NCBI GenBank assembly: GCA_964199315.1
Contig: OZ116705.1
Span: 14,322,001 to 14,386,000, forward strand
Origin: Orbicella franksi
Taxonomy: Eukaryota
DNA: 64,000 bases
Direction: 5' to 3'
Of this stretch, positions 39,883-42,016 are shown piece after piece (position 1 is the first letter of the stretch; each line of letters starts with the position of its first letter). The notes below the pieces were generated by a model. It was not told the DNA's origin. It made no database searches and worked only from the letters and a program-made list of their open reading frames with translations. Position numbers and translations under genes: made by a program.

Positions 39883-42016
39883 ATGACTTTTGATATCAAG
39901 CACCCAGCTGTACAAAGTTTTAACGTTATAATCATTGGTTCTGGTCCAACAGCTCTTGGTACCGCTCAGCGACTTTTACAGCTGATGAACAGAAAGTTTC
40001 CAAATTTATCAATTGCCATTCTTGAACAGAATGGCAAGCCAGGTGGACTTGCGTCCTCTGAGAGAGATGATCAAGGTTTCCTTTGGGACATGGGGGGACA
40101 TGTCGTTTTTTCACATTATGAATACTTTGATGACACGCTCGATAGGAGCATAGGGAGCTGGAACTGGAGAGAAAGAGCGGCATATGCCTTTATGAAGGGT
40201 TCAGACGGCACCAGAGGGTTTATTCCTTATCCAGTTCAAAACAACATCGAGGTAATGGACAAAGTGGACCAAGAGAAGTGTTTATCGGGGCTAGAAGAAG
40301 TTGTAGCTAAAGATGGAACACCAAAACATCCTGCTAACTTCGACCAGTGGCTTGTTTCAAACTTTGGTTTGGGCCTATACGAAGTGTTCTTGAAAAAGTA
40401 CAATAGAAAAGTTTGGACCGTAGACCCCTCGGAAATGAATTCTGCCTGGGTTGGCGAGCGCGTTGCTCTTCCCGATATAACCAAGATCAAGCGTAAGATT
40501 GCAAAGTACGACAACGGGACGTTGACGAAAGGTTCCCCCTGGGGACCTAACAATTCCTTTCGATATCCAAGGTATAAAGGAACAGGAGGAATATGGCAAG
40601 CCGTTGCTGACCGCCTCCCCAGAGAGTGGTTTAAATTCCATAGTAAAGTCATAGGGCTGAACATGGACACGAATGTTGTAAGGGTTGAGAGTGGCACACA
40701 CGTTAAATCGCTCCAGGAATTTCATTTTGACACTGATATCGACCGCACCGCTCGACATGTTTGTCAATATGATGACTGGAAGAGACGAGTTTCTAGAGGA
40801 AATGAAGAAATTGGCTTCCCATCTGGTTTACTCGCACACTCATGTGATCGGTATAGGGCTAACTGGTCAGCCTCCACCGATGCTTTTGAGCAAGTCGTGG
40901 ATGTACTTTCCGGATGCCGACGCTCCATTCTACAGGATAACAGTATTCTCCAGTTACTCAGACGATCACGTTCCAGAGCCCACAAAACAATGGTCCCTCG
41001 TGTGTGAGGCAGCCGAACCTAAGCAAACTGACTCCAATTTAGAATACTGGACGAAGGAAAATTTGATAAATGCCACCATTCAAGCATTAGTAGTTTATAG
41101 GTTCATTACATCAGACATGGTTGTATCAAAATACTATCGACGTTTGGAACACGGGTATCCAGTCCCATCTATCAACAGAGAAGCGATTCTCGACAAAGTC
41201 CAACGGTGGTTGGAATCCAAAGGCATCTACTCTCGTGGTCGGTTTGGAGGCTGGCGGTATGAGGTTTCAAATCAAGATCATTCTTTTATGCAGGGTGTTG
41301 AAGTCGTCGACCAGCTGTTACGAGCAATTCCCGAGGAAACGTACTTTAACCCAAGTCTTGTCAATTCAAGGAGAAACACTGGTCGGCTTTTTCCCTACGA
41401 GTTTGTGATCGCTCATTATAATGAAAATCTTGATTGGATAAAGCAAATAGCCAGCCATTCTCATGTCTATCATAAAGGCACTGATCGGCAGCCTCCGCCT
41501 TTAAAACTCCTTTCCTGGAAAAGGTTACCTAACGTGGGCCGAGAAAGTCACACATACTTGCACCACATCATAAATCATTACGATAGTTTGCCTGAGGTAA
41601 CTGTTTTCCTACAGGCAGACAACGGACATCAGTCTTGTGGATTCTTCACCAGGCCTCCTATGAATTATGTTTATGACGTCACAAGACTAACATCATTGAA
41701 ACGTACTTGCCTAAGGCCAAGTGTTTTCATGGCGTGGGGAAGAATCTCTCATAGTCTCAAGTGGCAAATTATGCTGAACAATGGTAAAATGCGTCCAGCT
41801 CGTTTGACTGTAGCAGAGTTTTTCAAAACTTTGTTTGGCTATCGAAACCCACCAGAAGTGTATTTTTGCCCTGGGGGATGTTTTGCAGCAACTCGAGACA
41901 TGATCAAGAAACATCCACTAGATTTTTACATCAAGGCCATAGCATTTGTGAATGATCATCCTAATCCGGAGGAAGGACATTACCTTGAGAGGCTTTGGTC
42001 TACGATGTTTTCATAA
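39883..42016 (+). CDS. glf: Eukaryotic-type UDP-galactopyranose mutase (GLF/UGM) fused to C-terminal DUF3431-like domain; intronless CDS with one frameshift at ~40732
   Basis: Joined ORFs 39838..41007 and 40685..42016: IIGSGPTALG (FAD), GFLWDMGGHVVFSHY, PYPVQNNI, YNRKVW, GERVA, WGPNNSF, WMYFP, PFYRITVFSSYS, HGYP, SRGRFGGWRYEVSNQDHSFMQGVE; then EFVIAHYNENLDW, LPNVGRESHTYLHHII..YDSLP, YLERLW. Acceptor AG at 39858-39859 precedes ATG 39883. Confidence 0.85.

Follow-up and report, generated by a model that had tools for sequence, protein, structure and literature searches.

The 64,000-nucleotide (nt) stretch analysed here (hereafter the window) comes from the coral Orbicella franksi (contig OZ116705.1, forward-strand positions 14,322,001–14,386,000). 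It contains a gene that joins a eukaryote-type uridine diphosphate (UDP)-galactopyranose mutase (UGM) to a domain of the Pfam family DUF3431. The gene has two exons, the short first one being predicted from its sequence to encode a signal anchor or signal peptide, and the long second one is broken by a 2-bp deletion (Table 1). Sequence matches in two reading frames place the UGM domain at 39883–41383, directly followed by the DUF3431 domain.

Table 1. Features of the UGM–DUF3431 gene in the window (L003 is another copy of the gene in the same genome; X3 and X15 are sequencing runs described in the text; ORF, open reading frame; GT, glycosyltransferase; AF2, AlphaFold2)
Feature	Position	Strand	Characteristics or basis
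Exon 1, 121 nt	37568..37688	+	start codon, basic tail MMFRTRKKLKR, hydrophobic core LLLMFCLVVSLL, start of the stem
Intron, 2171 nt, GT...AG, phase 1	37689..39859	+	donor AAG/GTAGCT, acceptor TTTCAG/G at 39859/39860
Exon 2	39860..42016	+	remaining stem, UGM, DUF3431, stop codon; broken by the frameshift
UGM N-terminal half, frame A	39883..40731	+	GSGPT Rossmann, GGH histidine loop, YPVQNN, GERVA, WGPN
Frameshift site, 2 bp (CT) lost	between 40732..40733	+	alignment with L003; run X3/X15 contigs with CT
UGM C-terminal half, frame B	40733..41383	+	FYR, HGYP, SRGRFGGWRYEVSNQDHS
Premature stop in shifted frame A	41005..41007	+	ORF 39838..41007
DUF3431, GT-A-like, candidate UDP-Galf-dependent transferase	41384..42013	+	Pfam PF11913, AF2 model

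Gene structure and predicted membrane anchor

The first-pass annotation had described 39883–42016 as an intronless coding sequence with both domains in one frame. Neither part of this description holds. Coding does not start at 39883 but in the upstream exon, which a phase-1 intron separates from the rest, and the 2134 nt of the region are not divisible by 3; they fall into two overlapping open frames, A (39838–41007) and B (40685–42016), with a 2-bp deletion after 40732.

Residues 16–56 of the Oculina homologue P0277 match 37568–37690 (tblastn, E 6e-5), where the window has an ATG start, an open frame and a splice donor. Exon 1 and this donor are 100% identical in the region of gene copy L001, 94% in that of copy L003 (both copies are described below) and 85% in a contig of a related coral (L016). 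Joining 37688 to 39860 restores a Gly codon, and the UGM frame runs on. Exon structures solved on chromosomes reveal the same plan in Oculina P0277 and in the starfish Patiria (P0042), i.e. a short anchor exon, a 2.2–2.6 kb phase-1 intron and a single ~2.2 kb exon; the intron lies at the identical ME/G/Y position in Oculina and behind the membrane-anchor exon in Patiria. The intron and the upstream signal-anchor exon indicate that the locus is not an intronless retrogene.

The layout encoded by exon 1, with a basic tail, a hydrophobic segment and a stem ahead of the catalytic domains, fits the pattern of a type II (signal-anchor) secretory-pathway enzyme (predicted topology). Its Kyte–Doolittle hydropathy is 2.45 over a 15-residue span; annotated relatives mostly have values of 2.0–2.8 over a 19-residue span. 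A basic tail and a hydrophobic segment also precede the Rossmann fold in the properly annotated starfish and Oculina relatives, and the membrane segment is present in NCBI-annotated and transcript-derived family members and missing from single-ORF genomic calls. With a signal anchor, the UGM would be lumenal, whereas those described to date are cytosolic. Concerning the neighbouring gene that had been called unc-45 and credited with 33 exons, a Pfam search of the genome for UNC45-central gave no match, its controls being equally silent.

Identity of the two domains

In a PDB sequence search, the N-terminal half of the UGM domain (frame A) hits Aspergillus fumigatus UGM (AfUGM) over its N-terminal 260 residues with an E value of 8e-60 and Trypanosoma cruzi UGM (TcUGM) with 6e-56, and bacterial UGMs reach about 1e-4 at best; Pfam reports NAD_binding_8 and Amino_oxidase for this half. 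The C-terminal half (frame B) matches TcUGM residues 262–473 (E 1e-53) and AfUGM (2e-47). GSGPTALG aligns with the GxGxxG motif of AfUGM that binds flavin adenine dinucleotide (FAD; G14–G19), and MGGHVVFSHY with G61-G62-H63 of the eukaryote-specific GGH loop (PMC3624792). We then transferred the 22 ligand-contact residues of AfUGM (Table 3 of PMC3624792) through HMMER alignments: 18 are identical in the window (T18, L46, H63, Y104, Q107, F158, N163, W167, R182, N207, V242, Y317, R327, Y419, R447, Y453, N457 and S461) and four are changed (D38E, S39Q, F106V and G456S). The UGM motifs listed in the first-pass annotation are thus real.

An AF2 model was made from the closest intact homologue (P0002), which is 90% identical to the window gene. 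In structure searches it superposes on TcUGM with a template-modelling (TM) score of 0.91–0.92, a root-mean-square deviation of 2.4 Å, 42% identity and E 3e-54; against protoporphyrinogen oxidase, identity is 14% and E 4e-22. By sequence and modelled structure, then, the N-terminal domain is a eukaryote-type UGM and not an amine or protoporphyrinogen oxidase; membership in the oxidases had been named by the first-pass annotation as fatal to its own proposal. Intact family members are predicted to interconvert UDP-galactopyranose (UDP-Galp) and UDP-galactofuranose (UDP-Galf) with reduced FAD. The full-length P0002 model has a predicted TM score (pTM) of 0.77, which is compatible with a fixed arrangement of domains.

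The remaining 210 codons match PF11913 with E 4e-19 and 69.5 bits against a cut-off of 25 (model positions 2–203 of 219), which bears out the earlier assignment to DUF3431. This family comprises ~4,400 clusters at 50% identity (E < 1e-3), with many members in phages and giant viruses. Among 80 aligned DUF3431 domains, no Pfam family other than DUF3431 was matched, and their profile retrieved only a spurious myoglobin (E of at least 0.006) from the PDB sequences. E14, K31 and N50 are invariant in this alignment; G52-R53-E54, H56-T57-Y58, Q77, P195-E196 and E202-R203-x-W205 are nearly so. No DxD motif is conserved in the 80 domains, and the conserved Q77 follows the strand at 72–77 (beta-4 position).

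The AF2 model of the DUF3431 domain is of high quality (predicted local distance difference test 93.1, pTM 0.91). A Foldseek search with it against the PDB returned nothing at E ≤1e-3 (best 2.6e-3), and every weak match is a GT-A glycosyltransferase or a related nucleotide-sugar enzyme; it is only this consistency in kind that is informative. The 50 top rows of an exhaustive VIA-align search (Z 8.6–6.4) are all GT-A glycosyltransferases, Stealth phosphotransferases or nucleotidyltransferases, with GlfT2 among them at Z 6.9; matches among Swiss-Prot models are WxcX, Stealth phosphotransferases, ArnC and DPM1. The modelled fold thus appears GT-A-like, and these moderate scores do not assign it to a family. 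Homology to DUF4422/GT111 was considered and rejected (hhalign probability 0.1%, no Pfam cross-match).

Gene copies and a recent frameshift

The CT lost after 40732 belongs to ACACTCTG according to the alignment of paralogues, and predicted translation stops at 41007 with loss of the C-terminal half of UGM and of DUF3431. The 497 Mb genome contains three copies of the gene, all on one 31-Mb contig, together with a 72-codon fragment on another contig; no further UGM or DUF3431 gene was found in these 497 Mb. L001, 337 kb upstream, is a near-identical duplicate with the same CT deletion. L003, 193 kb upstream and ~95% identical, reads FHFDTLISTAPLD uninterrupted at the deletion site and has a 1-bp deletion of its own, in-frame stops and a spoiled GxGxxG motif. 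As all three copies are disrupted in the alignment, the sequenced individual is without an intact UGM, and the galactofuranose (Galf) pathway that had been proposed for this cnidarian is not gained from this locus.

The L001 duplicate extends over at least 49 kb at 98.3–99.75% identity (window 14983–64000 against G000:C8:13,999,900–14,048,100, loci L009–L015), the frameshifted gene included. Either a very young segmental duplication or a haplotype left uncollapsed during scaffolding may account for it; in both cases the two regions have the deletion. An older collinear duplicate contains L003 (window 35567–49270 against G000:C8:14,164,375–14,177,128, 83–94% identity). The fragment (L004, G000:C7:30579176–30579406) is a remnant of a DUF3431 C-terminus with 62–69% identity and an in-frame TAG, and is an old pseudogene piece of a further family member.

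Contigs from other sequencing runs bear on the age of the lesion. A 634-nt contig of run X3 (DNA of organism B, a sister species) contains the CT after 40732 and departs from the window at only three further points. The sister-species gene is ~99.5% identical and free of the deletion, and the two-exon model with the X3 variants applied yields an uninterrupted 759-codon frame. A 1034-nt contig of RNA run X15 also contains CT, and its 15 substitutions and a 3-nt deletion common to L003 identify it as a transcribed relative. None of the residues that at least 95% of 71 full-length relatives have in common is lost from the window copy. The ratio of nonsynonymous to synonymous substitution rates (Ka/Ks) against the intact gene of the related coral is 0.22–0.44 across both domains, which indicates purifying selection on both. 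Because all conserved residues are kept and the sister species is intact, the lesion appears to be very young; these sequences are most simply read as a loss of function through a deletion that this lineage acquired very recently. The locus itself would thus be a newly formed pseudogene or null allele.

The same observations, namely CT in the sister species and in the RNA contig and a full set of conserved residues in the window copy, would also be expected if the coral made a functional fusion and the frameshift were an error in the assembly or consensus, or were heterozygous. The high identity of the window and L001 could then reflect two haplotypes instead of two loci, and Logan contigs drop minor variants. 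However, two copies that were assembled independently and can be told apart by other bases both have the deletion, and the loss of CT within ACACTCTG is not a homopolymer-type sequencing error. A short-read-derived contig of run X1 (organism A) spans 40681–40821 with zero differences from the window, deletion included, and no CT-bearing X1 contig occurs at a depth of ~124. We therefore regard an artefact or a single mutant allele as improbable.

Distribution and origin of the fusion

Intact fusions of ~700–800 amino acids (aa) are present in other cnidarians (the stony corals Oculina and Desmophyllum), where the first-pass annotation had recommended looking for them, as well as in the starfish Acanthaster and Patiria, the sea cucumber Holothuria and many further assemblies. 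Patiria has at least nine paralogous fusions. In a FastTree phylogeny of 134 proteins, the named cnidarians and the named echinoderms are split on one branch with a support of 100, and the window copy lies inside a coral clade. Full-length P0002, searched against the Atlas, matched only clusters of a generic amine-oxidase/UGM kind (0.87), which give no taxonomic range for the fusion. UGM-only proteins also occur in starfish (P0108, P0115 and P0117 from Acanthaster, Patiria and Asterias; 544–603 aa, with an N-terminal membrane segment); they are 69–73% identical to the fusions and are their neighbours in the tree, which would fit a secondary loss of DUF3431.

The first-pass annotation had suggested that the gene was acquired by horizontal transfer or retroposition. 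A two-exon structure common to Oculina and starfish, together with separate cnidarian and echinoderm clades, excludes a recent event of either kind in this coral, and an ancient transfer is possible. The broader idea that the fusion reached animals from microbes or viruses by transfer or retroposition, and not from a metazoan ancestor, would fit several features: the entire catalytic region is one exon in corals and starfish, the named animal carriers are patchy (only stony corals and echinoderms), a eukaryote-type UGM adjoins DUF3431 in Kuenenia and a planctomycete, and phages and giant viruses frequently carry DUF3431. We nevertheless consider it unlikely, albeit the least unlikely of the alternatives weighed here, given the anchor exon and phase-1 intron common to the coral and starfish genes, the single well-supported branch between the two groups and the host-like composition and repeats around the gene on a 31-Mb contig. 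With this shared structure, tree and surroundings, any transfer would be ancient and not into this coral lineage. The horizontal transfer reported for Ciona UGM (PMC13390645) concerns a bacterial-type enzyme of a different family and was set aside.

Since fungi and microbes are the best-known sources of UGM and DUF3431, the stretch could in principle be a contaminant or part of a chimeric contig with symbiont, fungal or bacterial DNA, which would have undone the first-pass proposal. However, the gene has a spliceosomal GT–AG intron and sits between dispersed repeats present on many contigs of the same genome; the stretch was found in 20 runs that 12 studies had deposited under several coral species names, and coral and starfish assemblies at chromosome scale have annotated orthologues. 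The intron, the host repeats and the coral runs exclude contamination for practical purposes. Three of the repeats, at 33290–34276, 45105–46019 and 46368–47353, are ~0.9–1 kb long with 93–99% identity to copies on many contigs; these repeats flanking the gene are presumably transposable elements.

Association of DUF3431 with UGM and glycosyltransferases

Elsewhere, DUF3431 is fused to GT90, Glyco_transf_7C, Gly_transf_sug, Nucleotid_trans and methyltransferase domains, and one triple protein combines a UGM-like domain, GT90 and DUF3431. Some long proteins (e.g. P0122 with 3030 aa and P0139 with 2271 aa, as well as P0141, P0156 and P0234) contain up to five DUF3431 stretches or DUF3431 with ankyrin repeats.

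We also inspected bacterial gene neighbourhoods for the best 80 of 186 DUF3431 loci. A UGM lies within 10 kb at seven of the 80 loci (five bacterial-type GLF and two eukaryote-type), and at three loci of unrelated lineages it is the next gene upstream in the same orientation, 22–164 nt away, the order being that of the fusion. In Kuenenia the cluster consists, in order, of a multi-GT protein, UGM, a DUF3431 protein, GT1/4 and GT2. A UGM of either type is present in all nine DUF3431-bearing bacterial genomes tested, against 38 of 121 Cytophagales (31%); the co-occurrence support in Cytophagales emerges only if either UGM type counts. The known Galf-transferase family DUF4422/GT111 (PMC12269835), taken as a control, behaves likewise: it was found in three of the same 121 genomes, all with glf and two directly downstream of it.

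Taken together, the GT-A-like fold, the glycosyltransferase fusions and the UGM–DUF3431 pairs support, at the level of sequence and model, a link of DUF3431 to UDP-Galf use, probably transferase-like. The earlier idea that Galf synthesis is coupled to its use is therefore strengthened for the family by the fold, the fusions, the bacterial gene pairs and the co-occurrence with UGM; a working pathway is not supported for this animal, whose copies are disrupted. A role linked to UDP-Galf other than Galf transfer by a glycosyltransferase, i.e. as a Stealth-like Galf-1-phosphate transferase, a nucleotide-sugar modifier or a UGM accessory or regulator, is unlikely in our judgement, and slightly more so than an origin by transfer. 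The longest structural alignments do include the Stealth/GlcNAc-1-phosphotransferases CpsY and GNPTAB (168–178 residues, Z 7.0–7.2), with SacB and LcbA (Swiss-Prot models) and nucleotidyltransferases also among the matches, and the missing DxD motif and the methyltransferase fusions of some members point the same way. The best Z scores, however, belong to inverting or retaining GT-A glycosyltransferases; DUF3431 occurs in series with other glycosyltransferases, resembling multi-step glycan assembly proteins; and the many stand-alone members of ~200–300 aa make a mere accessory role a poor fit.

Several bacteria have eukaryote-type UGMs of their own. Full-length enzymes of Siphonobacter, Spirosoma and Maridesulfovibrio are 39–47% identical to the starfish enzyme, and those of Kuenenia and the planctomycete are 35–45% identical to the window UGM (G003:C11:312791-314134, G004:C113:169451-170797, G006:C1:3805615-3806958, G005:C1:2877848-2879155, L037:5990-7324 and L070:7221-8621). 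Some of the bacterial genomes with a eukaryote-type UGM also carry a classical glf. These enzymes bear on the source of the eukaryotic UGM. In Candidatus Peribacteria (L100:8867-9979), a glf match of ~370 codons is split by code-11 stops, the listed ORF having 203 codons; an alternative genetic code is one possible reason, damage to the gene another.

Proposed mechanism and points against it

We consider it fairly probable, as a joint statement, that the locus is a two-exon gene for an anchored UGM–DUF3431 protein (37568–37688 joined to 39860–42016, ~759 aa if intact) that is inactivated here, and that its family performs lumenal Galf synthesis and transfer. In such a mechanism, (i) the signal anchor would place UGM and DUF3431 in the lumen of the endoplasmic reticulum or Golgi, both catalytic domains following the anchor; (ii) lumenal UGM would turn imported UDP-Galp into UDP-Galf; and (iii) DUF3431 would at once pass Galf (Galf-1-phosphate being less likely) on to an acceptor, either a glycolipid or a glycoprotein. 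The transfer would probably be metal-independent, the diphosphate being held by conserved Lys/Arg residues and a conserved Glu serving as the base. The equilibrium of UDP-Galp with UDP-Galf is 11:1 (PMC7278926). Because it favours UDP-Galp, fusion could help by pulling the unfavourable reaction forward. Cytosolic UGM feeds the Golgi through a UDP-Galf transporter (PMC7278926); lumenal synthesis would remove the need for one. Galf occurs in starfish gangliosides (PMC7278926), and the expansion of the gene in starfish agrees, by correlation only, with the Galf gangliosides and steroid glycosides known from these animals.

Several points weigh against this mechanism. Its main difficulty lies in flavin reduction, because we know of no reductant for the UGM flavin in the oxidising secretory lumen and the enzyme needs its flavin reduced. 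UGM is active only in that state, with NAD(P)H supplying the reduced flavin in the cytosol (PMC3624792). As for the anchor, the hydrophobic core has only 12 residues before an Arg, and such a short core could belong to a cleaved signal peptide instead; the splice between exons 1 and 2 in this species was read from sequence, with no read showing the junction and no read of the raw RNA run X22 (organism D) matching the gene. As for DUF3431, its fold matches are moderate (Z 7–8.6), a range that can reflect a common arrangement only, and the absence of a conserved DxD weakens the case for membership in classic GT2-like families; metal-independent GT-A families exist, which means that a missing DxD does not rule out a transferase. 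In bacteria, 73 of the 80 DUF3431 loci have no UGM nearby, and the co-occurrence in nine of nine genomes ignores their relatedness. In the Cytophagales sample minus the centre genome, DUF3431 (two genomes) and eukaryote-type UGM (three genomes) never overlap. Finally, run X1 may be the assembly's own sample and contigs hide minor alleles, which means that an intact allele may exist in the individual or species.

Implications for Galf in animals

The UGM–DUF3431 fusion family represents a variant of the Galf pathway that has not been described before, and our literature search found no paper on a membrane-anchored or lumenal UGM or on coupling of synthesis and use by UGM–DUF3431. As far as we know, Galf is absent from vertebrates and serves as a drug and diagnostic target in pathogens, and its synthesis in animals outside the nematodes has received next to no study, even though Galf gangliosides were recognised in starfish long ago. 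We tentatively propose a wider reading, one in which our confidence falls somewhat short of even: corals, echinoderms and probably other marine invertebrates would make Galf glycoconjugates by an anchored, lumen-facing UGM fused to DUF3431, the latter being an unrecognised UDP-Galf-dependent transferase family of bacteria, phages, giant viruses, fungi and animals. Such an enzyme would bypass the transporter and explain the Galf gangliosides and steroid glycosides of starfish, and would just have been lost in this coral lineage.

If true, a signal-anchored UGM would call into doubt the textbook view, in which a cytosolic UGM works with a transporter, and would pose the question of how flavin is reduced in the lumen. 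The family is a candidate enzyme set for animal Galf synthesis and gives a large orphan family, DUF3431, a testable function. The very recent loss of the whole pathway beside a sister species that retains the gene is a natural experiment suited to tests of the role of Galf glycans in corals. In brief, the observations of the first-pass annotation are partly confirmed and its interpretation is partly supported.

Comparison with known systems

The coral UGM domain resembles eukaryotic UGMs (i.e. A. fumigatus UgmA/GlfA, T. cruzi and Leishmania major UGM and Caenorhabditis elegans GLF-1) in its modelled three-domain flavoenzyme fold (TM 0.85–0.92), its GxGxxG motif and GGH loop, nearly all contacts to UDP-Galp and FAD, and 36–42% identity. 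The eukaryotic UGMs so far described are soluble, cytosolic and single-function (PMC7278926). By contrast, the coral gene adds a predicted signal anchor on an exon of its own upstream and a fused DUF3431 downstream, and the copy in this coral is also frameshifted.

The modelled DUF3431 domain shares with GT-A enzymes (GT2 members such as SpsA, heparosan and hyaluronan synthases, ArnC and DPM1, and the metal-independent GT14 enzyme C2GnT-L) a Rossmann-like alpha/beta/alpha core and an 'xYNE' loop after the first strand, with alignments over 145–179 of 210 residues (Z 7–8.6). It differs from them in lacking detectable sequence similarity and a conserved DxD, and in a signature of its own (E14, K31, N50, NVGRE-HTYL and a C-terminal NPEEGH...ER.W). 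Stealth hexose-1-phosphate transferases (e.g. SacB, CpsY and GNPTAB) are among its longest structural alignments and also use UDP-sugars. Their scores are weak, however, no Stealth sequence motifs were found in DUF3431, and Stealth enzymes move a sugar-1-phosphate.

GT111/DUF4422 is a galactofuranosyltransferase family with a fold of its own (PMC12269835). Its Galf transferases (e.g. the N-domain of Klebsiella pneumoniae WbbM, and Kingella kingae PamA) are, like DUF3431, small and were long of 'unknown function', and like several DUF3431 genes they are located directly downstream of glf in bacteria.

Fungi make UDP-Galf with the cytosolic UgmA, import it into the Golgi by the transporter GlfB/UgtA and use it there through the GfsA transferases (GT31). 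The coral family would likewise make UDP-Galf and add Galf to secretory-pathway glycoconjugates. It differs from the fungal pathway in that its transferase candidate is unrelated to GfsA, and in that synthesis and presumed transfer reside in one predicted lumenal polypeptide.

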